Shown: positions 4,983-63,076 of the stretch, one piece after another
How positions within the stretch are numbered: the stretch's first letter is position 1
Layout: every line of letters begins with the position of its first letter
Assembly (NCBI GenBank): GCA_965649825.1
Contig: OZ287702.1
Coordinates: forward strand, 1,292,786 to 1,356,785
Source of the DNA: Penicillus capitatus
Taxonomy: Eukaryota > Plantae > Chlorophyta
Length of the DNA: 64,000 nt
Direction: 5' to 3'
Notes under the pieces: generated by a model
The model's database searches: none
What the model was told of the DNA's origin: nothing
The model's input: only the letters and a program-made list of their open reading frames with translations
Translations under genes and position numbers: made by a program

Positions 4983-7259
4983 CTAAGATCGGCCAAAGGG
5001 TTTGAATCCATACCATCCAGTGCTCTGTGGAGGCTTGGGCTGTTGCGTCTTATTGCTGGATTGCTGCGCATGCAATGCTGCACTGCCGCCATTTGGTGCT
5101 CCACTTTGGGGAGCCGCTTGGGAACGACTGGCAGCTGTCGATGCGATGGAAGGAGGGGGTGGACGTTTGGGTGCCACTGCCGGCGGATTGGTTCCGTTCT
5201 GCGCCGTCCGTTGCAAAGATCCACGTGATGTAACGCCAGGCTGAGCAGTGCCACCAGCAGCAGCAGGGGGCTGAGAACGTGCTGGCCCCTGAGGTGGGGC
5301 TTCCCGTCTCCTCTCAGGCGTCACGTTGCGTTTGCCTGTTGGCGGCTTGGGTTTATTGATGAACACGTAGACGCCTTCTTCATTCTTCTTTAGACGGGCA
5401 GTCAGTCCTGCTCTCTCGATGATAGAGACGTCGATTTTGGCCGTCGGAGATTGTCCCATAGAACGTTCTGCCTCTTTGAGTCTCTGCTGTGCCTTGCCGA
5501 TATCGCTCACCGTATCCTGCACCTGCCTTCTATGGCCAGCAATTCCTGCATCTTCTTCCAACAGCATATCTTTGTCTTCATCAGGCAGGCGTAGAATGTA
5601 TTCTTCAATTTTGGGACCAAGGCTTTCGGTCGATTTGTCTACCAACAAATGAACGATGACTTTGGGCACGGTCATCACTAAGGTATCGCAAGCCAATCGC
5701 GTATAGTCCTTCATATCTGTCGCATGTTGCACAAGAGCGTTCTCCATTGAGAGTTCTGCGTCGTCTTCGAGGAGGATTCCAGGAGATGGCAGCAAAGAGT
5801 TGTCCGCATCTCGACAGATCGGATCCCAGAAAACCGCTGATCCCAGCCCGTGTCCCTGACCTAGTCTCAGTCCAACATCCCCATCGGCACGTCCATGTCC
5901 TCTTTCCGTCTTCTCCTGCACAGCGGGAACACTCGTGTCAGTGGACTTCGGGGATTGAGGAAGGGCGCGAGTGGACCAAGCCGCCACTCTGGCTCCAGCT
6001 CTCGAATCTGAGATTGTGTTTCGCAAATAATTGAGCCATCTGTACTTATCTGCTGCATCTTCTGCACGCAGAATAAGATCTTTACTTTTCTTATAGATGG
6101 CCTTTTCCGGATCCTTATTCCGAAGGAAAATCAACAAAGAAATTTGCGTTTCCGCGTCCAAATGATCCGTTGATTTCGAGATGGTGCTTTGGGGAAGAAC
6201 CCCCTGGCCGTCTGTATCGGAGACGACACAATCGGCCAACTGAATGGCAACGCTCGGCATCGTGCCTTTCAGGAATGCCTCTTCGGAATGGTAGTACTCC
6301 AATGTCTTGGCATTGTCACGTACCCCAAAAAAACGGCGTTGCCATAGAGAACTCTCAAATTGCGTAAGCTTATTCCGAGAACGTGTGGACGATTTTTCGA
6401 GATAACCAGAAACACCAAAAACCGCGTCCGGACTGGAGTATACGTTAGGAATGGCATCACCCGGCAGAACGGGTGGCAGACTGACCTCAGTTTCCGCCAC
6501 GGATCGTGCGTCGTCCTCCTCTTCCTCCTCATCTTCCTCTCCAGTTTTTCGAGATTGGCGATTTGTGGCATCCCGTCGCTTCAGAGCCTCTTGTTGGTCT
6601 TGGATGCGTCTGAAGGTGAGATAACGAAAGAAACTGCAGGACACAAAACACTGCTCCATTTCCACCATACGTACCGCCATTTTCATGGCCTCCTCTTTTA
6701 ATTCCTCCAAACCGATGTTCGCCACGGGCAGTATCTGTTCGATGTAATGAGGAAATCGGACGACAGGTGGACCCCTTTCCAGAGCTGGCACTTGACAAGA
6801 CTCTTTTATGGCGCGGTCAGCAGCCATGGTCACAATTCCATGCACACTGTCGACCAAATCGCGGACAGGATTGGACAGGGACCCGATGGATTTCTCAAAG
6901 ATGGCTCGAAGACCGGCCTCGGGTGCGACGAGGTAAGGCTGATAACCGTCCGAAATTCGAAGCTCTTCCTTTACGCGAGCGATGTCGTTGTAGATATCTT
7001 CGAGTGGCAATCGGCGAACGTGTCCCGGAAAGCCATTGTCATCCACAAGCTCGTTCTTGATAGAATCCGACAATTCTGAACCGTCTTCGAGGAGAGCGCT
7101 CAGTTTGTCCGTAAAGGCACGTGTCTGTGCCATTAAATCGGAGAGCCCACGTGGCGGTGCATTGAGTGCTTCGAGCAGTTTCATGCAGTCCAGGCGTTTC
7201 TTCGTTAAGGCTCTTGATAAATCGCCCAGGCCTTCGGTGTTCACGTCAACGACAGACAT
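4983..7259 (-). CDS. DRP2-like dynamin-related protein (stalk-PH-GED-Pro-rich tail) lacking the N-terminal GTPase domain; single exon
   Basis: 758-aa ORF; SDGYQPYLVAPEAGLR and MAVRMVEMEQCFV match the plant DRP1/DRP2 middle domain; PH domain (WQRRFFGVRDNAKTLEYY..LILRAEDAADKYRW); GED (VPKVIVHLLV); Pro-rich C-terminus. Confidence 0.9.
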   Translation of the reverse strand: MSVVDVNTEGLGDLSRALTKKRLDCMKLLEALNAPPRGLSDLMAQTRAFTDKLSALLEDGSELSDSIKNELVDDNGFPGHVRRLPLEDIYNDIARVKEELRISDGYQPYLVAPEAGLRAIFEKSIGSLSNPVRDLVDSVHGIVTMAADRAIKESCQVPALERGPPVVRFPHYIEQILPVANIGLEELKEEAMKMAVRMVEMEQCFVSCSFFRYLTFRRIQDQQEALKRRDATNRQSRKTGEEDEEEEEDDARSVAETEVSLPPVLPGDAIPNVYSSPDAVFGVSGYLEKSSTRSRNKLTQFESSLWQRRFFGVRDNAKTLEYYHSEEAFLKGTMPSVAIQLADCVVSDTDGQGVLPQSTISKSTDHLDAETQISLLIFLRNKDPEKAIYKKSKDLILRAEDAADKYRWLNYLRNTISDSRAGARVAAWSTRALPQSPKSTDTSVPAVQEKTERGHGRADGDVGLRLGQGHGLGSAVFWDPICRDADNSLLPSPGILLEDDAELSMENALVQHATDMKDYTRLACDTLVMTVPKVIVHLLVDKSTESLGPKIEEYILRLPDEDKDMLLEEDAGIAGHRRQVQDTVSDIGKAQQRLKEAERSMGQSPTAKIDVSIIERAGLTARLKKNEEGVYVFINKPKPPTGKRNVTPERRREAPPQGPARSQPPAAAGGTAQPGVTSRGSLQRTAQNGTNPPAVAPKRPPPPSIASTAASRSQAAPQSGAPNGGSAALHAQQSSNKTQQPKPPQSTGWYGFKPFGRS

Positions 7260-7396: not shown

Positions 7397-8625
7397 ATGT
7401 TCACGACGCAAGGGCGATTTCAGGCCGTCTCAAACGTAACACAAGCTCGACAGAGTCCACCCCGACGGTCGAATAGACCACAGTGTCAGCCGCGGCTATT
7501 TGGGAAGCCCAGAAAACAGAATACGCACAACGCTTCGACGCTCGTACGGGTAAAACACGCAAAGGCGAACCGTCGCGAACTTCTTTCCTGTCCGCATGAA
7601 GAGAGCAGCGGTGCGACGCGAAGACGAACATGCCCCCGAAGAATACAGCCTCGCCGATTCGATGGATCAGTTGGAAATCGTGTCCAACTCTTCGACAACA
7701 TCCACTTCCGATCCAGATGTCGAAGCTTTGATGGAAATAAAGGTCCGTCGTCCGCTCTTCATTTTCCTTGCATCCAATGATGTGACGTCTTTGTTAGAAG
7801 AGCGAGGAAGTCGAGTTTCGGAGTGAAGTTGCTGCCGGCTGGATCGGAGCGGCCATGCTCTTCGGAGTCGGTATCTTCTATTTCTTCGGCCAGGAGAAGG
7901 CTGAAGAGTACTTTGCTGGATATCTCCTCGAACAGAGTCTCTCCGTCGACAATCTCTTTGTCTTCATTCTGGTCTTCAAATACTTTCGCACACCTCAGGA
8001 GTACCAGTCTAAAGTACTGACCTATGGCTTTATCACTGCAGGCGTGCTGCGCCTGATCATGGTCGTGATGGGTGTCGAAATCATCGAATACTTCCATCCC
8101 GTTTTACTCGTCTTTGCAGGACTGTTGGTCTATTCCAGTCTTCAACTCCTTCTGACAGATCCGAACGAAGACGAGGATCTCGGAGAGAACACCATTGTGC
8201 GTTTCTGCCGTCGTTTGATCTCCGTTTCCGATCACTACGATGGAAATCGCTTCTTCACTCAACAGAAAGGGATGATGGTGGCCACACCATTACTGTTAAC
8301 GCTTGCGGTTGTGGAACTGAGTGATGTCGTCTTTGCTGTCGATTCTGTTCCTGCAGTCTTTGGCATCACCCTCGATCCCTTCATTGTCTACACCTCGAAT
8401 CTCTTTGCCATTCTCAGTCTCAGATCGATCTATGGATTCGTTTCGATTGTGATGACTCAGCTACGGTTTCTAGACAAATCTGTTGCTGTTGTGTTAGGTT
8501 TTATTGGTCTAAAGATGGTAGGCGATTTTGGTGGATACCATCTAAGCACCGACCTTTCGTTGTTTATTGTTGCTTTTGTTCTGGGCAGCGGCGTGGCTGC
8601 AAGTACACTCTTTCCAGAAAAATGA
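7397..8625 (+). CDS. TERC: Thylakoid membrane TerC protein with probable transit peptide, about 3 exons
   Basis: YFAGYLLEQSLSVDNLFVFILVF and VELSDVVFAVDSVPAVFGIT are TerC signature motifs; Arg/Ser-rich N-terminus. Confidence 0.93.
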
Positions 8626-8970: not shown

Positions 8971-11241
8971 ATGCCCATTCCACTCATTGCCCTTTTCCTA
9001 TTTGGATGGTCGTTTGTCGGAGGGTCCGTTGGCCAACCGACGCCAGGCAGCGATTCAACCATCCACATTGAATCATGCTTTGCCTTGCGGCATGAACTTG
9101 GAAGACCGGCTGGAAATGAAACATTAGTTTTGGCCCAGAATTTAACCTGCGGCGCCGATGAGTGGCCCTTTCCTGTAACCGTCAGGCAAGACAAGATTCT
9201 CCAAGGCGAACTCGGTGAACATGCCTGGACACTCGATCTCTCCAGTCTGAAAAAAGGCAGTGGCATCAAACTCGATTCTCATATCCATCTCACCCTGGAA
9301 CGTCTCGTTTTGCTCAACCGGCCAGAGGATGAAGAACAGCAATTCTCATCACTCTCGTACATACATCTCTCAGTCGGTGCAACCATTACCATCGCCCAAA
9401 GCTTCATCATCTACACCGATTGCAAACATGTTCGGCAGAAGTCTGATTTGATGACGACGAAGAGCACAGATGATCCGTATCATTTTTGCGGAACGCGGAA
9501 GCTCTGCCGACAACAGATCCATCGAAATCGACAGTACACGATCGACAAGAAGATGAAGAACAGTTGTTTGTCTGGGAATGGATTGGCAGCAGAACTGTTA
9601 CAAAAAGACGAGGCCAGGGATCAGCCAAAACGGCCAATAAACAGCCTTGCCGTGTTGATTGCCCTGTTGGTGCTACTCTCGGGATTTGTTGTGATGGGCG
9701 GCATCATTGTATGGATGTGTCGTTCAAAAGAGAGTTCCGCACGTGTGCTCGACACCTTTTTTCACCAGGATGAGAAATCCTTCACTGCCAGTGAGACGAC
9801 GGAAGTGGATTTCTCGATGTCATTGAGACTCGTTGCTTTCGATGATTTCTCTATCGATCTGGATCAACAACTCGGAGTAGGAGGATTTGGAACTGTTTAT
9901 GCAGGCAGATTTCAAGTAACGCCTGTGCTCTTCTTTCCTCTTCTCTACTCTATTGCCATTGACAGAACCAGAGAGCAGCCATCAAGGTTATCAAGTCCGC
10001 TGATGTCCCTGACGGACACGAAGCGTGTGAAGAAGCAAATCTCTCGATCGGGTTATCGCATCCAAATGTGATTAGATGCTACGCGACGAGGCACGTCAAG
10101 ATGAAAGACCTCTTTGGTGAGCAGCATCCCCAAGGCAAGGCACCTCCACACGACGCCTGACGATTGATCTGGCGGTCTTTGGCAGGAGATGACGACTGTA
10201 CACTGATATTCTTGGAGTACTGCGACAAAGGAGAGTTATCCAGAGCCATCGATCGAGGAGAGTATGTTCTGAATTTCGAATCCTTGCAGCCAAAGATGTG
10301 TTCCATCTTGCACTGTGCCCTCGATGTTGCCAAAGGACTGCAGTATCTCCACTCAAACAGCATTGTCCATGGAGATATCAAACCCGATAACATTCTTTTG
10401 AAGACCGATGAACTGGATCCTCGCGGCTACATTTGCAAAGTACACAGCCCTTTTCTCGTTCCTCTTCTAACAACAGGTCTTTCTGCAGATTTGCGATTTT
10501 GGGTTGAGTAAAAAACTGGAATCTACTGTGACACGATCGGACACATTGGGTATGATTTCTTACATGCCACCAGAGATGCTACGCAAGGGACGCATTGGGA
10601 GATTTACAGATGTGTATTCGTTCGGGATGTTGCTCTGGGAGATGGTCACTAGTGATGTGCCCTATTCCGAAGTGGACTACAATCAGATTCTTTCCGAAGC
10701 TGTCAATGGCAGGCGACCCGGGATTCCAGACACCACCCCAGCAACCATCAGAAGCCTAATCAAAGCATGCTGGATTTCTGACTATCACCGACGGCCAATC
10801 GCCACAGACATTGTTCGTCGTTTGCATCTGGCCCTGTCCGAGTGGTATTCATCGTTTCCGATGCATCCAGTGACAACTGCCATTCCACGATGGCTCAGAA
10901 CAGGCGGACGAAGGTCCGAACGCCATTCAATTCTTAACTCAACTGTATATGCCGAGTCGTTGTACTCGGATACTGCTCTCGAGGAACCAAGAGAAAGTCA
11001 CATACCTCAGAGTATCATCAAGAGCCATTCAACCTGTATCCATTCTGAATCCACAGGCCAAGATCTTTTGTTCTCTTTTGCGGGGCGGGCGGGAGCGACT
11101 TCCCTTGATTTGAATGACAACGGTGAACGGTGTTCGATTCCTTCTCGCTTGCCATCTCCGCATCCCACCATGAATGATGTGGACCATCCTCACTCCTCTC
11201 CAACCACGAACGTTTGTATGACGTCCATTCGAGTTGAATAG
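8971..11241 (+). CDS. Receptor-like TKL protein kinase (signal peptide, ectodomain, single TM, kinase), 4 exons
   Basis: Hydrophobic N-terminus; TM LAVLIALLVLLSGFVVMGGIIVW; LGVGGFGTVYAG, AAIKVIK, HGDIKPDNILL, ICDFGLS, YMPPE, DVYSFGMLLWEM across spliced exons. Confidence 0.9.
10135..10185 (+). other. GC-AG intron (51 nt) in the receptor-like kinase
   Basis: CCCCAAG|GCAAGG...TTTGGCAG|GA; removal restores QHPQGDDDCTLIFLEYCDKGEL and removes an in-frame TGA. Confidence 0.8.
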
Positions 11242-11914
11242 AACTGTCCCTCCCTAGCAGCACTTGGAAATAACAAGCAAACCAGAAGGACATGGACGAA
11301 TTCAGTTTCGTTGAGTGGGTAGTGAATGTCTCTTTCTGTGATTCCTTTGACCCCATACACCACGGCAACGATTTGATGGAACGGACATACCAGTAGAGCA
11401 GGCATGATGATGAGCCTTGTTTCTCACGCACTTGCGTCTCTAAGCTATGAAGAAGTCTAGGTCCCCTATATAGCTCTCCCCTGCATTGAAACGTTCTTCT
11501 GTGTCATAGTTCATCTGAACTCAACGTCGAGCTGAACCAAAACCACTTTTACTGTCCATGGGACTGGACTTATCTGCTACATTGTTCGGTTTGAGGATCT
11601 TGTCATCATCGTCATCATTTGTGAAGTTGATGGATTTCAAAAACTCAGTCAGAGAAATAAAGGACTTCATACACCTGACAGCCTCAATTCTGTTTTGTTT
11701 GTCTTTTAAGTGCTTCTTGTCCAAACCAGGCCACAAAGATGCTGTTGAAAATCTTATAAAGCGCTCGCATACCATCCAACCAAGTCCGTGCTCTATTTAT
11801 TGTCTATCCATAAGCTGACCGGACGGAATAGTGAACAATTCTCGAGCATATCATGAGACAAGGGGCTTAATCTTGCCAAATTGATGTTCTTTTCATAAAC
11901 AGAAGTTCCCTGGT

Positions 11915-12802
11915 TCAGCTGAGCGGGATCTTTCGGAACATGGACTCTGCACACTTGAGATATGCTTTCCAAACAGGATCGGAGAAAAGTACAAAGTGTA
12001 CTTCTTCAACATTTCCTGCATGTTTTTTTACGGCTTCGAGCGAAATCTGAAATGGGATGACTGCATCATCTGTCAACACAGATCTTAGAAGAGTATCACC
12101 TCGGCAGCTTTGTCGATCGGATAACCGTAGACTCCACAGCTGATGGCCGGAAAAGCAATGGAGTGGAAGCTTTCTTCGTTGGCCATTTTCAAACAGGCCC
12201 TACACAAAGGTCGATGATCATACAGGCCACATCGATCGCAGAAACGAACTCGTAGGTCTTTGTCAGTAGAGGACTCGAATCGGCATCGTTGGTGTAGACG
12301 GGGCCCACGGCATGGATCACATGCGATACAGGGAGACGAAATCCTCTAACTCCCAATCCAAACCAGGCAGAGACGAAAAGGACTTACTCCGTCAGACGTG
12401 CTTCGCCTGTCGGACACCTCACACCTGGACGCACTTCTTTCTGCTTTCTACACGCCTCCAGCAAAGCAGGCCCTGCAGCAGTATGGATAGCGCCGTCAAC
12501 GCCGCCGCCACCCAACATGGCCTCATTCGCTGGGAGAAGCAATGCTGCTTAAGGAGAGCAGTTGGCCGAACAGCGAAGAAACCTGCATTGACCATGACAT
12601 CTCCATGCCACTGAACAATGTTGCCCTTGAGCAGGTAAAGATCCGAGTTATTGTTCAGCATAAAGCACTGCGTGTCCTTCGGGTCCACTGCTGTGTCCAC
12701 TCCAAAGAAACGCTTTTCTTGACGGCTCATGACGGGACGAAGCCTTCGGAGCGGTCTCGATCGTTGAGAGATGCAGAATCGCGAGATCCGTTGAAGAAGC
12801 AT
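11915..12802 (-). CDS. Macrodomain protein (MacroD-type ADP-ribosylhydrolase) with organellar presequence-like N-terminus
   Basis: Spliced translation [61 protein letters not shown]; Arg-rich N-terminus [23 protein letters not shown]. Confidence 0.92.
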
Positions 12803-12880
12803 CTAGCCGAGCAGTCGTCGTTGCGTTCGTGTCACATCGTGCGGCGCAATGAGGCAATATTTTCAAAACCATTTACGATG

Positions 12881-15533
12881 CTACAATAAAAAGTCAACAA
12901 TGGAGAGACGCGTCGGATCTTCTTTGAGCTTCTCCCATTCCTTGCACATGCCTCGCACATGTGCTGTACCCACAACGGCAACAATTCTTCTTTCGTGTGG
13001 CTGATGATTCTCATGGCCATTCTGAATTGGAAAGTACATACCGTCTCCTGTTCCCATGGGTGATGCCAGATGATGACTGTCCTCTGGCATGACAAATCGA
13101 CAGAAAACGCGACCGTCTTGCACATCTGGAACGTAAGCAGGGGCTCCGCTGCTCACCTCTGTTGTACCATGCAGCATCGGCGATGTGTTGAAAGGGAATG
13201 GTGCTTACGGGTGGCAGTCATGAAGAGATTGCGTGCCATGTACTGGTCGCGTTGGTTGATGACGGGATCCATTGCACCTGGCCAGCCCAGTAAGGCGTCC
13301 TCTCCGAAGAGTTTCAGTGTTGAGTCGATGTCGGACTGAATTGGAACCTTGACGCGTACAGCCTCCTCTATCTGATCCACGGATTGCACTGCAGAAGAAG
13401 AGTGACTCTGAGCAATTGTAAGATGGGAAAGCGCACATGAGAGCCATCCAATTTCGGCGTATGGACCAAGGACAGGCCATAGAAGCACGACACATCCAAT
13501 AAGCATCACCCACAAAGAATTGTCAGATAGTGCATCTGCCATTCGCTGTTACCGTAAGGTGCTCTATGTTTAGCTGCTAGTGTTACCTGGAAACCAGGAC
13601 TGTCGAGCAAGAGTGCCAACAGAGACGGCATAGGCGACAGCTAGAGCAAAACGTGCACCCATGCCTGCAAAAATGCTTTCGGCGATGCGTTTCTGACTCA
13701 CCTACGAAGCATGGACGCTGAATCGGATGCAGCGACTTAAGAGGCGAAAGGAACTTGCTCAGGAACATCGAACAGCTGGATTTGAGAGACAGCATTGCGT
13801 AAAGATGCTGTCATACCGACCCTCCATGCAGCGCCTGGGTCCACTCCGACTTTTCGTCCAGCATCTCCCTGGAACTTTCCATACAACGACGTCACTGCCA
13901 CTCCAAAGTACTCCGCAATTCCCTGCAGTCGTCTATACGACTCATAACAATGAAGATCTGATTACCTTCTTCTGTTCATCATCTCCTAGAATGAGTGGAG
14001 ACTCGTTGTCCGTCCACTCTCGCCACAAAATCGGCTTCTGCTTGAGATTCTCTACGAGTGATGCCGTGGCTTCGGCGTCTTGAGGATCCTGCCCTCTGTC
14101 TTCGTCGTTTCCTGTCAAGTTTTGCAGGACCTTGGTGGGAATCATCATTTTCTCCGAGAGCTTGAACGGTCGATTTGCTGGTCGAAAAGGCTCAATGCCC
14201 CATCCATAACCACCCTCTGCTCCTTCCTCGAATCCTACACCGATACCATCGCACGCAAGAAAAAGAGTCCCTCAGAGAACGCACCAGCAACAAGCAGTGG
14301 ATCTGTTTCTCTCCGTGCCCGAACGATGACCTCTGTCCTTCCTTGTGCTTCACCGCGGAAAATCGTTACAGCTTCATCCGCCCCTTGGCTTTGGCAGTAG
14401 TCCAGAATCGTCTTTCTCAACTTCAAATAGCAATTCAGACTGACAGTGCCTTCTTTGGACATATCGACAGCAGTCCTTGCCATGTCTTCGATCTTCGTTG
14501 GATCTAGTTGGTACTCCTTCAGACTGCTGTCGATACGAACAGTGATGCTGATGATAGGAGGCAGACTACGGTCCCTCATTTCGAACTCGACCGCACCCAG
14601 AGGGGGAATCGTCTGTACCTCCATTGCACCGTCTGCATCATCAGCATCCATCTGTCCTCATCTGCACGATCTGATAAGCATTACCTCTGTACCTTGCACT
14701 GAATGCAGGAGCTTCTTTTTCGTCCGCCCGTGAAAATGCGGGACGCCCTTTGCTGAAAAGACCTGTCATAAAAGGGATGTCCGGCAGAGAACATATGCTC
14801 GGTATCTTCCCACCTGTTCCCAGTAGCGTCAGAATGTCAGCCTCGATATCTTGTATCTGAATTGGCACGCCTTTTTTCGTCTTTAACAGGGATAGTACTT
14901 CTCTCGCATCTGGCCAGTCATCCGAAAAAGTACTGCCGATAATCGATATCTACAGCCAGATATGTGTCCAGATCAGAATCAGGATCTAAGAGATTATGTA
15001 GAACTTTTCGTGCTTGCCACGTCTGGGAGTCTTGAGTATTGCGATCGACCAACAATCCAACGCGATCTTTGCTCAGTTCCAGACAGACGACATCCGGGAC
15101 AACAGCATCGATCAAATCGTTTACCTGTTCACATACCAACATTCAGAATCCTATATAATGAGAAGAAGGTCGGAACCTGCTGACAAGAAACTTTCGAGAC
15201 GTGTGAGATGCCCAGCACGTAACAGTATGTCATCACTCCATCTTTTTCGACTGACAAAATCGCGACTGAATTCTCCAAAGAGGAAGGAATCGTGACTTTT
15301 GCCTAAACAGGATGCACATTGGAGTCATGAAGTAGCATTGAGGGAAAGGTCGAGGGGACGGCGGGGACACTAGTGGATAGACTGGCGGCCATGGTTGCAA
15401 TGTGACTTCTACCATGGCAACGAAGTCCAGGTCTTGAGCTGCGTGATATCCGCGTACTGCTGCGTCGAATTTGATGGATCCGCCAATTGACGAAACCATT
15501 CGCCGGACAACGGGTTTTGACAGAGCATTCCAT
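12881..15533 (-). CDS. TraB/PrgY-family protein with large internal insertion (POTRA-like) and transit-peptide-like N-terminus, multi-exon
   Basis: YVLGISHVSKVSCQQVNDLIDAVVPDVVCLELSKDR (N-part), KVGVDPGAAWR, VINQRDQYMARNL and RIVAVVGTAHVRGM (C-part) are TraB motifs. Confidence 0.85.
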
Positions 15534-17913
15534 GATCGGAGAGCGAAACGATTAAAGATCGCATGTTATTGTACGACAGAATGAGTTCGATAAACGAACG
15601 GCTAAAGTGATTAAATATTTCGATGCTCTTGCAGCGTTCTGCTACGATGGGTAATGAAATATGATTCGCGAGATTCTCGCACATGAAAGACAAGATCCCC
15701 ATCGTCATCGGCAACGTCGCCACGTGCCGAATGACTTTGAATCTGATTCGCGCACCTTTGCTCGGTAGATGTTTGTTTGAAAGCTCGCAAATGTGTACTC
15801 GTCGACTCGGTGGTAGTTTATCCCCGCAAAATTCATCATCACTCTTGCACTCTGCGATACCCAAACGATCAGTGTTTGCTTTGGGGCGAAATCCATTTCA
15901 TTCACAAAACGTAGAAAGGACACTCAATGTGTTTCATTGCTATTCTTACAATTTTGACGACGCTAAGCTTACTGTGATGGGGACCATCTGGAGTTGGATG
16001 AATGTCAATAACTACATTCAAAGTCTAACGTTTTTTTTTTGAATCCAACTCGGCCAAATCGCCGTTTGGATCGTTGCTCTTGTAGTCGCGATTGCAATTT
16101 TGCTTATGTACCGTATATAATCTATCGACGTGAAAAGCTTCTGGAACATATTTGGCAGCACAAGTTGTTTGACGTTGACTCATGATTGACAAATATGTCA
16201 CCCTTTGCAACCTTCTATATTACTCGTGTCTTTGTTTTCAGCTACCCTCTAGCAGAAAATCTCAAGTCTCCGCGTCTATCAGAGCTTTATACATGCGAAA
16301 CCGTGTTTGTCACACGAGGATTGCAAAACAAGAGCAATAGAGGAAGAATGATGAACATAGCTTAAACCAATGTGAAGTGCTGTGTTTCCTTACAGGTAAT
16401 TAATTGTCAACAGCTGTTACACAGAAGAAGTTATATCATCCACCTCCATGGGCTGAATAGTAGAGCTTTATCTCCGGAGTCTATCCCGAATTAGGGTCGA
16501 GTAACAATCTTAGCGTTGTTTGCTTTCGAGAGAAGAATACGTCGTTCGATGCATTCTTACGTAATTGGACAAAAACAATTAAGCGATTGTCTTCGTAATG
16601 AGTGTAGATCGTGGATTTAAGAACTCAGCTATGTGTAGTCTTCTTATGATCTCAAACATTCTTTCCTTAAAACAACGGTGCATACCTTCGAGGTGAAGAC
16701 TGCGATGACGTCACCATAAGACGAGAAAACATCCTGTCTTATGCATTATGGGACCAGCCACAGAGAAGGACGCAGAAAATGGAAAGCTCTGTTTTCATGG
16801 CAGATACCAAGAAGACGATACAGTGAGACATCGAACCCGTACCTTCGTTGTCGTCCGTTTCATGGAGCGCAGAGAAGGATACCCAGAGGGCAACAGTGTA
16901 CATCGAAGGCATATCAACCTTCCGCCGGTGACAACGGCATCCTTTGCCAGTTCCAAACGATAGATGCGCACTCGTTGAGTTCGAACACTCCAGACAGACC
17001 AACACAACAAACCCCCCAGAGTTGCGGAAGAATCTACGACGGCGACAATCGACCTTGAGGCCTTTCCTACTCCTATTTTCTCGCCCGTCTGGCACATCGT
17101 GTACTAGACAGTCTACGCGGAAAGAAAATGCGCCACGTCGATGGAGACGGAAGCGACTTGCAAAGCGTTTTCAAAAACACATCCGTCATCTACAGTATAT
17201 CTTTCACTTGTACGCCCGCTTCAGTCAGCCGACGCACGTTCAACGCACGCACCATTCCATCGTGTTAATGCCATCATTAAATGACGTCGCCCAATGGTCA
17301 AGTCTTCTTTGTGCATCGGTTGGGACACTCACTCACTGAGTCTCTTCGCCAAACAAGAATAGAACCCAACGATGCAGATCGTCTGGACATCCCTTGAGTT
17401 TGGCAAACAGGGAAAACATCTGTCGCGTCATGATCTTGTCAGCACCGTATTTAACCCCGTACTGCCTCCCTACTCACAGAATCACAGTGCCACACGTTCA
17501 TGAGCTCCTAAACTCCTTTCAAGAAACCCAAAGCGCCGTACAGCTCGTGACCACATCTGTCAAAAGGGAACGAGTCGATCAGATAAATAACAGGCCATTA
17601 TAACATTAGGTTTTATTTCTGAATGCAATCCAACGCGCTTCGACAACTTTGAGAAGTCTCCGCGACGCATTAGCATTTTACATCCACCCACCTTTTCTTA
17701 ATAGTCAAGCGTAACTTGTCGAAAAGACAACACAGCGCCTCTTGTAGGCTTCTCCAACAGACGCGCTTCCTGGTGATCAAGATTAACCGGCGGCATGAGT
17801 GAAAACCGCGTTTTGCCTAGTTCCTGCTGAGCCAACTCGTCCAGACCGATAGAAGTGAATTCAGCTGTTTACTTGTCGACCAAAGGACAATTTTCAAAAA
17901 GGCCAGTGAAGAC

Positions 17914-29368: not shown

Positions 29369-31949
29369 TCAGGCACTGATGCATTCTCCTTCCTGCAGAG
29401 CCTCCTGTTCTTCACTATCGCCCTTCTCTGCACGAAAGAGCCCCTGACAAGGCTCCATGGCGTAAGGCAGCAATTCCAGATCACTCAAATTGACACTCAT
29501 TAGATCAAAGGCGATGCAAACGCCGGCATGCACATCTGCCTCTACGACTGGCACCTTGGGATACCTGCACAGAATATGCCAGAAACTGAAGCCAGACCTT
29601 AAGGGGGAAAACCTTTGACTGAAGTGTGTAAGAATAGTACGGTAGGCATTGGCCTCTTTGGCGATGCGAATGGCATCTTGCGTTGTGCTGTGCTTCTTCA
29701 GCAGTGCTTCCGTTTTCATGTCCTCTTCAAAAGTCGCCTCGTGAATCAACAGCGTTGCCTCTTTCGCGTGATATCGAACGGCATCGCATGGCACAGTATC
29801 GCCCGAATAGACGACTTTCCATCCCGCTTGGCCCGTGAGGGCTATGCCATAGGCGAAGGGACAGTGATCTACTGGGAAACTCTCAATGCTCTTTAGATTC
29901 AGCACGTCTTTGATGGATGCGAGCAATTCCATCGAATCCCTGTGGCACAAGAATGTCGACACCGTTGCTGGTCGTTTGTTCAAGGTTTCTCACTCTTGTG
30001 GGACGCGTGGCCTCTTTGGCTTTGGCAGCGTCGCATTCGTTTCGTAGATGCAAAGATATTTAAAATGCAGCGGCTCGAGCTCTTCGTAGTTCTGCATCGT
30101 TGAACGGAGGAACGGAGGACCCATGAGCAACAATGGCGGCGCCGTCTTGTCAACCTAACACCATACATCCCACGTTCAGGGCCAAATTCTGTAGGCAGTG
30201 TGATTTGACCAGTTTCCGTCGTTCTCTCAGTATTGTCGGCAGTCCGATGTGATGATCTGCGTGGATGTGGGAAATCCAAATACACCTGGACGACATCCGG
30301 CGCATCTTCCTTCCACTCGGCCGGGATAATTACCTGAGTTTCTGAATGGCTCTTTTCGCACCTTCTTTGCCAAAGCGACGGATCAACTGGCCGTGGGATC
30401 CTTCCCCGCAGTCCAGCATGACACCCCCTCTGTCAAAGAAGTCCAAATAGATGCCTGACACATTTCTGTATTTCGAAGGAATGGAGGCGCCTGTGCCCAG
30501 AAATGTCACTTCCAGTTCATCCGATGGAAAGTGCCGATCGTTCCGTGCATCGTCCGCCTGTTTTCTTCGCTCGTGAAACTGCCCAATCCGTTCCAGCACT
30601 TCGGGATCGTCCTCTTTGAGGTCATCGGCGACCTTTGAACGACAGAATGGCTCCAGAAGCTGTGATGTATCTACTCCTTTCTTTCCTAGCGGTTTCAGAT
30701 GATAACGCATGAGATCTTTTCCCATAAGCACTTCATCGCGCTGCCATTCCTCCAAAATGGGCGTCGTTATCTGGGGATATGGGAAGTAGTCGTTGTCGAC
30801 CAGATTCAGCTTCGCCTGCACGATGGCAGCCTTGCGCATGATTGCGGTGGCATTGACGGCGCGCTGATTGACGAAGATATGACGGACATCGTTGGGAAAC
30901 CGATCCATCCACTTTTGATACGGCCCATTGGAGACGATCTCGTATGGACCCAGATGCACCATCACCAATTCCCTGTTCAGATCCGATTTCTCATAGAACC
31001 GCTCGAATCCAGGAGCAGAGAACAGTGCAGAGAAGTAATGACGATCTGGGCAGTCGACGATGAGGACGATGGGTCCAGGCATAGACGGCTCCATGACTTC
31101 ATGCGGATGCACGACACGTCCATTAGAGCCTCCAACACAGGCACCATCCACAAGTTTCGAAAACTCTGGCCCGGCAGGGACACCGAGCGCTCGTGCCTTC
31201 TCGGGCAAAAATTTTCCTTTGATCTCGCTCAGCTGACATACATAACAGGCAGCAGGGACAATACTCTTCCAATCCGTTGTCTGTAGGAAAGGATTTAGGG
31301 ATTCGACGGAGCCCGTCGGCTCAGGGATCAGAAGGATCGGTCGGATCTCCACCTGTTCGTTGGCGACGATGGGCTCTCCCAGAGATCCTGCCGTGACCTC
31401 GGAGCCAAAATTGGAGCATCCCAGGCCCTTCAGCGGAATAGATACAAATGAGCTCAACGCCTTTAAGTACTGATCGAGTTTCACAGGACCGTGCAGCTGA
31501 AACACCGTCGAGCCAGCTGAACTGTGGATGCCGTTTTCGGAGAGAGTGATGAACAGTCCAGGCACGCCTCCTGCCGCTTCGGTCGTCATCCGGGTCAGAA
31601 ACACGTCACTCAGTTTTCCCAGTTTCAGCCGATGCTGATAACAGTATCTCTGAAATCCTTCACCGACGTTGAAGACGTAGCGGTAGGAATCAAAGAAGAG
31701 CAGCACAGAGGGCATGGTATCTCCTGTATCTGTCCCGTTGCCCAAAATCTGGAGATAGCTCTCGGTGTGTCTGTAGCTTTTTTTCCTCGTCGTCGCCATC
31801 GCCGTCGATTCGACCGCCTTCTTCGACAGGACTGCTTGGAATACCTTTTTGGAGTTGGAGACGAAAGGGGATGACGTCAGGGGTCGCTGGTAGCGCTGAA
31901 CTTTGTGGAAACTGCAGAAGATCGCGCGCCGCGCTACGAAGGAACGCAT
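29369..31949 (-). CDS. TRZ: Long-form RNase Z (tRNase ZL, ELAC2/TRZ1-like)
   Basis: YLQILGNGTDTGD, FNVGEGFQR, GKFLPEKARALGVPAGP, FLGTGASIPSKYRNVS, WISHIHADHH, VYSGDTVPC, LIHEATF, ILTHFSQRY. Confidence 0.95.
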
Positions 31950-31972
31950 CAAGCGACAGCAGCTCTTATGTT

Positions 31973-54945: not shown

Positions 54946-56503
54946 TCATTCAAGGGATGTCGTGCCAATTTGTGACACCCGTGTGGACTTTAGTCGATAA
55001 AGAAGGATTTGTGGCTTCCAACCAGCTTCTTCCAGCTGAGTGAGAAAATCGCCGAACCGCATGTTCGTTTCTCGAAGGCTCTGATGAAAGGCATCGATCC
55101 CTGGAGTCCAATGATGCTGTGATTGCTGCTGAAGCCATAAGAATTGCCAAAGGGCTTTGAGACAGTGCTTTGCTCCGCCTCCTTGCTTGAGCACCACAAA
55201 CCCATGTCCCTCTTCAACAAACAGCAGATACTGCTCTTCTCTGTAAACGTCAATCCACGAACTAAATCTTGCATTATGTACAAGACGTTCGGAAACGTAT
55301 TTCAACGAGCTGCCGAATTCGATAGATGGTGTGGCCAACAACCAGTCCGTCAGAATCTGCTGTTTCTGTGCCATCGTTGCGGGATCGGTGAGCGGCTGTC
55401 CAGCGAGATGCAACTGAATGAGCATACTCGATCGGACGAGGCTAAGGGAATCGAACTGAAGACATCGAAGGGCGATGAAGCGACATACGACGTGGATGGA
55501 ATGGAAAATGGCCCAGGTGACCAGAACAGGTTCCCAGCCTGTCGCATCTTGTAAAGATGACAGAATAACAACGCTTGTCAGCAAGCCTGTAAACTGCCCG
55601 GCCACCTCCCATGACTCTTCCTTGGCTGACACCTCACCAATGTTGTTGTTTCGTGCAAAATGCTGCTGGATAACACGTAACGAAGGTTTCGCCATGCCCG
55701 TTGCCAAAGCCCTGGCGAAGTTTCCCGTTCCGGCCAACAAAAGAAACTGGGAGGGAAAGAAGACCGTTGCGATCTCCAGAGAGAGCCCGACAGTGACGAT
55801 GACATCAGCCGCCATTCTCCACTCGCGTGGGTGCTGATCGATGTAGAGTCCCAAACGGCCGCCTACGAACAGACGGCCCAATGCTCCTACTCCGTCCTTC
55901 GTGATCCACTTGATCGATGCGGCGACAGCTGTTGCCGGAACCGCACTGGATCCCACACCGACAGCCCGGAGCATACTGCTGGTGGCCAGGGAAGTGCTCA
56001 CCCATCCCTAAACACATCTTCTCGTGACGATCGCGACCACGTATGTATGCCGTTCACACGGTGATATGAGTGGGCAGTGTCCACAGTTGATAGGGCAGAT
56101 AGTCAGCTGACACAGACTTTGGAAATTCCGTAGGGATAAAGAGTCCTAAAGATGCGCATCCTAACCCTGGCTGTTGGTGATGTTGCCTACCTGCCTGTTA
56201 TGGCGTCGGACAGGCGGAGCGTTTGATTCTGTAGACGGGATTTTCCGCTGTGTTTGACTCTCCAGTGACCATTGGCATCAAACAGGAGTGTCTCTGAGCC
56301 AGTTTCGACCAGGACCACCTCGTTCTGCAGAGGTTCCTGTCCAATACTTGAGATCGCACGACCAATTGTCTTACCTTTTCCGCCATCGGTCGTGCGTTGT
56401 CCGACGGCGACCGACCATTGCGGCATCGCGGCTTCCTCAGCACGTATCTTCTCTTCAGAAAGACTGTCTGTCTTGGACATGGGACCGTTCTCGAGACGTA
56501 CAT
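54946..56503 (-). CDS. RUS: Root UVB sensitive (DUF647) family protein, RUS5-like, with probable transit peptide
   Basis: SVSADYLPYQLW, KWITKDGVGALGRL, PREWRMAAD, HFARNNNIGEVSAKEESWEV. Confidence 0.9.
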
Positions 56504-61311: not shown

Positions 61312-61536
61312 CTCTCCTCGACCTCAACCAACGCGACAGAAGGTGTACGATTGACCGTAGACGATGTTGCGACGACAACTGCTCCGAGTGCTCGATGCGT
61401 GGACAACGTGGAGAGGGGCCATTCGATTAACGTCGTCGCCGTCGTTGAAAGGCTCCGTCTCGACAACAAACCTTCAGGTGCGGGGGCAGGATTGGAATCG
61501 CTTTCGGAAAAACGCTGATCTGGTTGGCAGCGATGG

Positions 61537-63076
61537 ATGGCTCTCACGTGTCGCGCATCGAATGCGCGGGGTCTATTCTTCGGCGAAGTGACAGAAGCAA
61601 ACAAGTCGTTGTTTCGACGAGTGCCATTTCCAGGGAGAGGCAGATCCGTCTTCTCTCCTGGAATGTCCTGCCAAAGACCATACGTCTCACACCTTTGAAG
61701 ACGTCATCGAATGACGGTGACTGTTTTGTGCAGAGTTATGTCCCGTTGTTGCCGGATGGGATCTCTCCTCGACTGGCATCCGGTCTCGTCGCTTGGTTCG
61801 GTGCCAGCACATTCGGCGTGGCGACGTTGATCATACTGGGCGGCGTCACACGTCTCACGCGTTCGGGCTTGTCCATGACAGACTGGAAATTCACAGGTTG
61901 GGCGACCGACGTTTGGCCGCATCTCTCGATCGATCGTCGCCCGAATGGAACAGGCGAACGTCCACCGCTGACGGCATCGGACTGGGAGACGGAGTTCGAA
62001 AAATACAGACAGAGTCCAGAGTTTCACAAAGTCAATCGAAGCATCTCGTTAGAGGAATTCAAGTTCATCTACTGGATGGAGTACGCTCACCGAATGTGGG
62101 GCAGATGTCTCGGAGCGATCTTCGGTACGTTCCGTGCACGAGACGTTGCCGAATTGCCTTCCAGGGCTACCCGCACTCTACTTCGCGGCGAAGAGAGCCA
62201 TCACTCCTGTACTGGGGCAACGCATCGCCCTGCTGCTCATGATGGGAGGCGCACAGGGCCTCGTGGGCTGGTGGATGGTGAAGAGTGGACTGGAAGAGCC
62301 TCGGAACGAAACGGCTGTTCCTCGAGTGAGCCCCTACCGTCTGGCGGCGCATCTCACATCCGCCTTCGCGATCTACTCCTTTCTCCTGTGGACGACGCTC
62401 TCCTTGCGCACTCCCCGTCCTCTCCTCCGATCTGCCTCTCTCGTCATCCAACGCGGTACGGCATCGGTGGGAGAAGCCTTCTGTCTGCGAGACGCGTCCA
62501 GAGAGCCGACCACTGAGATCGTGGCTGATGCCTTTGGGAGGACTGGTTGGCATCACGGCGATCTCGGGAGCGTTTGTCGCGGGCAACGACGCGGGAAGGA
62601 GCTACAACACGTTTCCAAAGATGGGCGTGGACTGGATCCCCGAAGAGTACTTCGCTCGGAGGGTCTTCTCCAGAGAGCATCTCTTTGAGAACACAGCCTC
62701 CGTTCAGCTGCACCACAGGTCCGCGACCGAATGCCGCCCAGACGCAGATATCGCGTCCTTCGCACCAGGGTGTTGGCTCTGGCAACCGGCGCTAGCAGTG
62801 TGGCTCTCTTTCTCAAATCGCGCAGCATGGAGCTGCATCCCATTTCAAGACAGTACCTCATAGGTGCCACTCCCTGTACGATGCCCATCTGAGAGGTGGA
62901 TGGCCGCAGAGCTGTTCGGCGCCGTTCTGGTCCAAGGCACCCTCGGAATCTTCACGCTGCTCAACCACGTACCCACCTGGTTGGGTTCGGCTCACCAGGC
63001 GGGAGCACTGATTGTCCTTTCTCTCGTTATGGGTGCGGCACACTCCTGCCGAGACGCGACAACCTTCGCGGTGTAG
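61537..63076 (+). CDS. COX15: Heme A synthase COX15, multi-exon
   Basis: LGGVTRLTRSGLSMTDWK, EFKFIYWMEYAHRMWGR, GLVGWWMVKSGL, VSPYRLAAHL, SGAFVAGNDAG, VQLHHR, GSAHQAG. Confidence 0.96.

Follow-up and report, generated by a model that had tools for sequence, protein, structure and literature searches.

A predicted tandem of POTRA domains nested within the TraB/TIKI fold of a chlorophyte protein family

In a 64,000-nucleotide (nt) stretch of DNA from the chlorophyte Penicillus capitatus (contig OZ287702.1, positions 1,292,786 to 1,356,785; hereafter the window, with all coordinates counted from its first letter) we investigated a minus-strand gene, 12881..15533, whose product belongs to the TraB family and is interrupted by a large insert. 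We hold it highly probable that this is one gene, coding for a presequence-like N-terminus, a TraB/TIKI fold that is split in two, a nested pair of predicted POTRA domains with a Gly-rich motif, and a helical hairpin within the second TraB part. Both domains are known; what is new is the nesting of a POTRA tandem in the TraB fold, along with the helical hairpin and the presequence. A preliminary description of this DNA, prepared from the letters themselves, had already proposed a TraB protein split by a POTRA-like insertion. That proposal is borne out by the analysis below, which extends it by a second POTRA domain, a conserved motif following the latter and the hairpin insertion.

The insert and its predicted POTRA domains

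The TraB motifs break off after residue 137 and restart at residue 415, thereby delimiting an insert of 277 residues (138-414; 13966..14949, minus strand), close to the length of about 300 residues estimated earlier. The 52-residue peptide ISIIGSTFSDDWPDAREVLSLLKTKKGVPIQIQDIEADILTLLGTGLFSKGRP, on which the preliminary description had drawn, is encoded here exactly as quoted and spans the junction of exons 4 and 5 (14949..14814, 14762 onwards). The insert corresponds precisely to exons 4-7 and has phase-0 introns on both sides, with the exon 3/4 boundary at nucleotides 411/412 of the coding sequence and the exon 7/8 boundary at 1242/1243, both of which are multiples of three. Such a layout is expected if the insert entered as a module, and could also be a coincidence; it is compatible with the acquisition of the insert as an exon module.

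The first predicted domain, POTRA-A (residues ~132-229; 14571..15022, minus strand), contains the motif IQIQDIEADILTLLGTGLF, is traversed by two introns and has its first strand beginning just upstream of the exon 3/4 boundary. When family profiles were searched against all PDB chain sequences only POTRA proteins ranked at the top, among them the Omp85 proteins of Thermosynechococcus (2x8x) and Anabaena (3mc8). A profile of four sequences recovered 2x8x, 3mc8 and 9ccg with E-values of 5e-4, 6.5e-4 and 1.2e-3, and a profile of 41 full-length sequences recovered the same three with 2e-7, 3e-6 and 4e-4, with Toc75 and BamA appearing as weaker matches. A 15-sequence profile of the tandem POTRA region likewise matched 2x8x (E = 2e-7), 9ccg (1e-6) and 3mc8 (6e-6). 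The profile match covers the helix-2 motif D-I-E-x-D-x-x-x-L-L-x-T-G-L-F and its flanks, the pattern to which the preliminary description had drawn attention, and is a match of POTRA-A only. In Pfam scans PF07244 was the sole family to be matched repeatedly (4 of the 15 members, best E = 0.001). Single sequences fall under its cut-off (best score 12.6 versus 21.3 bits; E = 0.001-0.24), and consequently the databases annotate only TraB, or nothing at all, on these proteins.

For the second domain, POTRA-B (residues ~237-314; 14316..14549, minus strand), the identification comes from structure only. We modelled the insert of the Bryopsis orthologue with AlphaFold2 using a 74-row alignment, and obtained a model with a mean predicted local distance difference test (pLDDT) score of 89 and a predicted template-modelling score (pTM) of 0.79. 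It displays two beta-alpha-alpha-beta-beta units, both with a pLDDT of 96-98. In the case of POTRA-B the elements are E249-254, H265-280, H285-302, E307-312 and E318-325 in Bryopsis numbering, and POTRA-A seemingly has extra strands. The window protein is 58% identical to this modelled protein in POTRA-A and 46% in POTRA-B. A Foldseek search of PDB with the insert model returned a list in which all 50 of the 50 matches were Omp85-family proteins with POTRA domains. The best of these was 3mc9 (E = 4e-7), with a probability of 1.00 for the top matches, and next in the list were Chlamydomonas Toc75 from the TOC-TIC complex, Arabidopsis Toc75, BamA and FhaC. The top matches align over about 190 columns, which amounts to two domains corresponding to tandem POTRA1-2, and with the full-length Bryopsis model as the query the list was the same, all the matches in it being POTRA proteins.

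It strikes us as very improbable that the insert is an unrelated lineage-specific domain which resembles POTRA by chance, through a small alpha/beta motif of a common kind. The scores of single sequences below the Pfam POTRA cut-off (12.6 versus 21.3 bits) would agree with it, as would the low template-modelling (TM) scores of 0.25-0.40 to solved POTRA tandems. However, these TM-scores probably reflect a differing orientation of the two tandem domains (root-mean-square deviation of ~10 Å over 190 columns), and both the profile E-values of 2e-7 to 6e-6, with only POTRA proteins at the top, and the uniform Foldseek list with its best probability of 1.00 speak against a chance match. The reading of the insert as a tandem of two predicted POTRA domains, rather than as the single POTRA-like region suspected at first, is supported by the sequence profiles and the structure models.

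Downstream of POTRA-B lies a conserved Gly-rich motif, AGFEEGAEGGYGWGIEPF (residues 324-341; 14185..14288, minus strand), which spans intron 6 and for which the family alignments give the consensus TGLE-x-[ST]A-x-GG-x-G-x-GI-x-PF. No library family matched this motif. Its region is confidently modelled in the Bryopsis orthologue, and is followed by a helix and a linker of lower confidence.

Gene structure and distribution of the family

The gene lies in eukaryotic nuclear DNA of about 50% G+C, in which the minus-strand frames are broken by short GT-AG introns. Its exon model was built by reading the minus strand of 12500..16000 with homologues as a guide. The resulting coding sequence starts with an ATG at 15533 and closes with a stop codon whose last base is 12881, the very limits given in the preliminary description, and consists of 12 minus-strand exons that specify 693 residues plus stop and are separated by GT-AG introns of 43-66 nt. 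Exon 1 (15533-15369, residues 1-55) provides the presequence-like N-terminal extension; its donor is either 15369 or 15360, which leaves an uncertainty of three residues in the model. Exons 2 (15302-15177) and 3 (15124-15005) encode the N-terminal TraB part and contain, respectively, the motifs LGISHVS and VCLELSKDR, both of which had been recognized beforehand. The insert starts with exon 4 (14949-14814), continues through exons 5 (14762-14685) and 6 (14632-14285), and ends with exon 7 (14234-13966). The TraB fold resumes in exon 8 (13922-13755, residues 415-470), which is followed in the spliced model by exons 9 (13701-13587) and 10 (13535-13437), and the C-terminal TraB part is encoded by exons 11 (13388-13209) and 12 (13158-12881, with the stop codon at 12883-12881).

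The spliced product has the same length, 693 residues, as the Bryopsis sp. KO-2023 protein BSKO_08552 (P0002), with which it is collinear at 49% identity. Against a family profile of 41 members, from which the window sequence had been left out, it scores 677 bits in one stretch covering positions 14-640 of 650, and against the tandem-POTRA sub-profile it scores 192 bits; these scores indicate that the spliced model is more than chance. This collinearity sustains the original proposal of one gene with a TraB fold split by an insertion. An exact look-up of four N-terminal variants of the model in the protein collection found no match, so that no existing annotation confirms it.

Two points of the model, the introns 13436..13389 and 13754..13702, were settled only with the aid of homologues. 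At the latter site a frameshift or pseudogene was considered and rejected, as the homologue alignment places an intron there and renders VSQKRIAESIFAGMG coding. At the former, the stretch CALSHLTIAQSHSSSAV, which lies in an in-frame open reading frame (ORF), was rejected as coding sequence, as the same alignment identifies it as a stop-free intron of 48 nt. Retention of this GT-AG intron (13389-13436, minus strand) would add 16 residues (CALSHLTIAQSHSSSA) with the frame intact; the homologues indicate that it is spliced out. A related observation concerns the closest homologue, P0001 (eukprot g8599.t1), an annotated protein that lacks its N-terminus. Around PEKVHFIYSWFSCYVLGLQINQKK, where intron 8 of the window gene lies, it has about 16 extra residues that are absent from other members. 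These residues suggest a retained intron in P0001, and existing annotations of the family may therefore contain errors.

We consider it extremely improbable that the architecture is an artefact of the gene model, with the TraB and insert exons belonging to two genes or the insert being unspliced or misassembled. The splice model is a prediction from DNA and homologues, and the insert coincides exactly with exons 4-7, as such an artefact might have it. Yet, with TraB motifs flanking the insert, a second gene would have to be nested in the first one, with strand and reading frame in common; moreover, more than 40 full-length proteins have the same order, one of them also found in a transcriptome collection, and AlphaFold2 models the full-length protein confidently as one body (pTM 0.84). 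The member in question has the MMETSP transcriptome collection among its listed sources and is probably a single transcript.

It took an exhaustive profile search of 1.84 billion representative proteins, with the insert as the query, to see the extent of the family. Word-indexed homology searches were insensitive (4, 10 and 3 matches) and detected no named outgroup for the POTRA module. The exhaustive search recovered 227 representative clusters with E <= 1e-3, of which 114 reached E <= 1e-10, and many are 600-750 residues long. In every long member retrieved the insert is flanked by the two TraB halves, and the same domain order recurs in over 40 full-length proteins, drawn from independent genomes as well as metagenomes. 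All the named members are chlorophytes, namely Bryopsis, Scenedesmus, Monoraphidium, Chlamydomonas euryale and a pedinophyte, and the remaining clusters are metagenome or read-archive assemblies. Judged from these sequences, the TraB-POTRA architecture has been conserved across a family of chlorophyte proteins. Some members (P0004, P0094, P0114, P0121 and P0161) keep POTRA-A alone, without POTRA-B and the Gly-rich motif, which points to a modular insert whose length varies between lineages. Pfam annotates TraB at most on the family proteins, the NCBIfam scan produced nothing useful, and the literature on TraB with POTRA, on TraB with the chloroplast envelope and on the Chlamydomonas Ctap proteins contained no description of the architecture that we could find. 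The earlier suspicion that it is undescribed thus agrees with both the literature and the database annotations.

TraB/TIKI motifs, the helical hairpin and the N-terminus

The N-terminal part of the TraB/TIKI fold (15005..15302, minus strand; exons 2-3, residues 56-137) comprises a strand ending in LGISHVS, with the first GxxH-type His, and a strand VCLELSKDR with a Glu and an Arg. Pfam PF01963 matches the window protein with 29.0-29.9 bits versus a cut-off of 26.8, over profile positions 4-95 of 263 only, and matches the orthologues with 25.8-35.3 bits. The fold resumes in exon 8 (13755..13922, minus strand; residues 415-470) with GIAEYFG...VGVDPGAAWR...QIQLFDVPEQ. In the LGD(R)P-type motif of the family the Asp is present in all 41 of 41 sequences and the Arg in 26 of 41, the window protein having Val in its place. 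The C-terminal part (12881..13388, minus strand; exons 11-12) contains LFGEDALLGWPGA, the segment NQRDQYMA, a beta-hairpin and IVAVVGTAHVRGM. NQRDQYMA represents an 'ERD' motif, whose Glu is found in 27 of 37 members and is replaced by Gln in the window copy, and IVAVVGTAHVRGM supplies the second GxxH His. The two GxxH His residues are H89 and H668 in window numbering. When scanned alone, the C-terminal half matches PF01963 weakly over positions 232-257 (E = 0.14). After removal of the hairpin described below the match improves to a weak but collinear one over positions 144-225 (E = 0.007), and PF01963 is the sole family matched by this half. In addition, the family profile finds the Tetrahymena 'TraB family protein' 7w5z_E (E = 8e-5), aligning with its N-terminal end (residues 31-82) and its C-terminal end (270-297). 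Taken singly, each of these matches is weak.

The full-length AlphaFold2 model of the Bryopsis orthologue (pLDDT 87, pTM 0.84) is disordered in residues 1-59, and places the motif residues at or just after four strands that are flanked by helices. Of these residues the family shows little or no variation at H101, E125, R130, D473, R597, D598 and H669 (Bryopsis numbering). Members of the TIKI superfamily have a His/Glu catalytic set, consisting of two His and two Glu at the ends of core strands, and often carry appended substrate-recruiting domains (PMC6254334). The window protein has both His and the first Glu of this type of set, all nearly invariant in the family, and a Gln at the candidate second Glu, that of the 'ERD' motif. 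On sequence grounds, the conserved motif residues of the family are compatible with the TIKI His/Glu catalytic set.

The fold is interrupted a second time, between the LFD-x-P strand and the C-terminal TraB part, by a hydrophobic helical hairpin (residues ~469-541; 13438..13760, minus strand) with the helices IFAGMGARFALAVAYAVSVGTLA and LWVMLIGCVVLLWPVLGPY. Kyte-Doolittle hydropathy peaks here at 1.67 (residue 489) and 2.0 (residue 524), and the Bryopsis model has two long helices, H476-510 and H518-550, at this place. From hydropathy and model taken together, the hairpin is a probable membrane anchor. Hydropathy detects no C-terminal transmembrane segment; the hydrophobic segments are internal only, and the protein ends 25 residues past GTAH.

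The N-terminal 62 residues include 9 Arg, 2 Lys, 11 Ser and 5 Thr, with no Asp and a single Glu, and the corresponding stretch of the Bryopsis orthologue, 59 residues long, is modelled with a pLDDT below 50. The extensions of 20 family members that start with Met are 48-100 residues long and contain, without exception, more basic than acidic residues. These features indicate a predicted organelle presequence. The preliminary description had spoken of a plastid-type N-terminus: its presequence-like character stands, and the composition is compatible with a plastid transit peptide, as it is with a mitochondrial presequence. We regard targeting to an organelle, together with anchoring in a membrane, as likely on the basis of these predicted features. 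The plastid is slightly favoured over the mitochondrion as the destination, and the fact that the best POTRA matches are cyanobacterial Omp85 proteins and not BamA, with no Sam50 listed, mildly favours a plastid context.

Possible function and comparison with known systems

POTRA domains bind extended peptides by beta-augmentation, and are the substrate-docking modules of the machines for beta-barrel insertion and plastid import. Taken with the recruiting domains appended to TIKI proteins, this makes a membrane-anchored TIKI-type hydrolase that recruits unfolded polypeptides the simplest reading of the protein. Our best guess is such an enzyme anchored in the envelope, or else a scaffold descended from one, with POTRA domains that would hold extended polypeptides. 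The presequence would deliver it to an organelle, most likely the plastid, and the helical hairpin would serve as its anchor in a membrane, the inner envelope being the likeliest. As the chain re-emerges from a hairpin on the side where it entered, one membrane face would bear the two TraB halves together with the POTRA pair. There the POTRA pair would hold an extended polypeptide by beta-strand augmentation, as in Omp85, Toc75 and BamA, the candidate substrates being transit peptides, imported proteins in unfolded form and precursors of beta-barrels. It would then present the substrate to the TIKI-type His/Glu site, which would trim or degrade it. To this statement as a whole, mechanism included, we assign an even chance. 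That the protein is an active hydrolase acting on polypeptides we put at somewhat under even. More speculative still, and in our opinion unlikely, is a specific form of this reading in which the protein would be an inner-envelope protease that faces the intermembrane space and feeds POTRA-captured transit peptides, stalled preproteins or barrel precursors to the TIKI-type site. The POTRA pair of such a protease may derive from an OEP80- or a cyanobacterial Omp85-like ancestor.

Several points weigh against the reading as a hydrolase of the plastid envelope. At the level of the domains, profile searches gave no sequence-level match for POTRA-B, and the protein whose structures were predicted was not that of the window but its Bryopsis orthologue (46-58% identity over the POTRA region). 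The TIKI superfamily is marked by an alpha/beta fold built around a parallel beta-sheet, and no TraB/TIKI structure appeared among the top 50 Foldseek matches of the full-length model, so that the TraB fold rests on the sequence profiles and the placement of the motifs. The Gln in place of the 'ERD' Glu and the Val in place of the 'GDRP' Arg make the catalytic competence of the window copy uncertain. With regard to location, the composition of the presequence is alike for plastid or mitochondrion here. Arabidopsis TRB1/2 (PMC9513094) and human TRABD (PMC12329661) are mitochondrial outer-membrane proteins. Finally, the profile search turned up no member of the family among the chains of the solved Chlamydomonas TOC-TIC structures, and the main text of the paper on Tic20/Tic214 pull-downs in Chlamydomonas mentions no TraB protein.

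The replaced residues of the window copy would also suit a protein with the same architecture acting as a non-catalytic scaffold or tether, in which TraB is a structural platform and the POTRA pair docks on an Omp85-type barrel (Toc75, OEP80) or another partner, thus bridging membranes or complexes. Structural or tethering TraB proteins do exist, such as 7w5z_E of the Tetrahymena respiratory chain and Arabidopsis TRB1/2 (PMC9513094), and POTRA domains mediate protein-protein contacts as well. However, across more than 30 divergent members both His, the first Glu and the Arg-Asp pair vary little or not at all, which argues for selection on an active site; by contrast, the Tetrahymena subunit lacks the first His in the aligned segment. 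We rate such a scaffold as rather unlikely.

Likewise, the mitochondrial outer-membrane location of characterized eukaryotic TraB proteins (PMC9513094, PMC12329661), together with the likeness of the presequences of both organelles in green algae and the Arg-rich nature of the window's, would agree with a mitochondrial protein. Such a protein would be related to the mitochondrial TraB proteins but divergent from them, and its POTRA domains would work with Sam50 or in the intermembrane space. Against it, the best POTRA matches are cyanobacterial Omp85 proteins followed by Toc75, with no Sam50 among the matches listed, the named family members are all photosynthetic chlorophytes, and a presumably cleavable presequence combined with an internal hairpin differs from the tail-anchored layout of TRB1. 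A mitochondrial protein of this kind is an improbable alternative to the plastid hydrolase, in our estimate.

On the TraB side, the protein is comparable to the TraB/PrgY/GumN family (PF01963; human TRABD, Arabidopsis TRB3, Enterococcus PrgY/TraB and Tetrahymena 7w5z_E) of the TIKI superfamily, with collinear Pfam and 7w5z_E matches. It shares with this family the GxxH His after strand 1, the Glu-x-x-x-x-Arg after strand 2, the (G)D(R)P after strand 3, the (E)RD-x-x-M helix and the second GxxH near the C-terminus. Unlike these proteins, it has its fold interrupted twice, by the 277-residue POTRA tandem and by the hairpin of about 70 residues, and bears a predicted organelle presequence. On the POTRA side, the Omp85 proteins (2x8x, 3mc8/3mc9), Toc75 (5uay, 7vcf_B) and BamA (2qdf) likewise present a tandem of beta-alpha-alpha-beta-beta units with the helix-2 motif D-x-x-x-L-x-x-T-G-x-F. 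In contrast to them, the POTRA pair of the window protein is nested in an enzyme fold of a protein with a predicted alpha-helical anchor. The full-length AlphaFold2 model has no 16-stranded beta-barrel, POTRA-B being followed by a short motif, a helix and the remainder of TraB, and the Pfam scan detected no Bac_surface_Ag or Omp85 match; hence this protein is not a member of the Omp85 family.

Arabidopsis TRB1 and TRB2 possess a transmembrane domain at the C-terminus and function as endoplasmic reticulum-mitochondria tethers and mitophagy receptors, TRB3 is described as cytosolic, and POTRA is not mentioned for any of the three Arabidopsis TraB proteins (PMC9513094). TRB1/TRB2 resemble the window protein in being eukaryotic membrane-bound TraB proteins of the green lineage, membrane binding of the latter being a prediction. 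They differ from it in that the window protein has a presequence-like N-terminus and an internal hairpin, and no C-terminal transmembrane anchor. The analogy with outer-membrane tethers drawn in the preliminary description therefore fails. A POTRA domain on an alpha-helically anchored protein, and not on a beta-barrel, is also found in the bitopic FtsQ/DivIB. However, FtsQ has another POTRA subtype, has no enzyme domain and belongs to the bacterial divisome, and it was not matched in any search that we made. To our knowledge, POTRA domains are essentially unknown outside the Omp85/TpsB barrels and FtsQ.

Directly downstream of the TraB gene, and on the same minus strand, lies a macro-domain gene (11900-12802), for which a rough concatenation of exons gave a match to Pfam Macro with E = 6e-40. 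The distance from the TraB stop (12881) to the candidate starts of this gene (12802 or 12730) is ~80-150 nt, which is unusually tight for nuclear genes. The macro domain was considered as a part of the TraB protein and rejected, since the window has a stop codon at just the point where the orthologues, too, come to an end. Further long ORFs or exons of the neighbourhood, at 1873-2802, 4983-7259, 7855-8625, 10504-11241, 30330-31952, 54946-56001 and 61524-62516, gave matches to ankyrin repeats, a dynamin-like protein (Dynamin_M, PH, GED), TerC, a protein-kinase C-lobe, tRNase Z, RUS/UVB-sensitive (DUF647) and COX15/CtaA. Across all 64,000 nt of the window, neither a tRNA nor an Rfam match came up. 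By these matches, the neighbourhood is an ordinary gene-dense nuclear region.

The family described here is a clear case of domain-in-domain nesting, with an insert bounded by two phase-0 introns, and the POTRA domains predicted in its more than 200 representative clusters are missed by the current domain libraries. For chloroplast biologists it provides a concrete and testable candidate for an envelope factor that would bind unfolded polypeptides. If the protein were indeed an inner-envelope protease, import or the biogenesis of outer-envelope barrels would gain a proteolytic step of quality control or processing.

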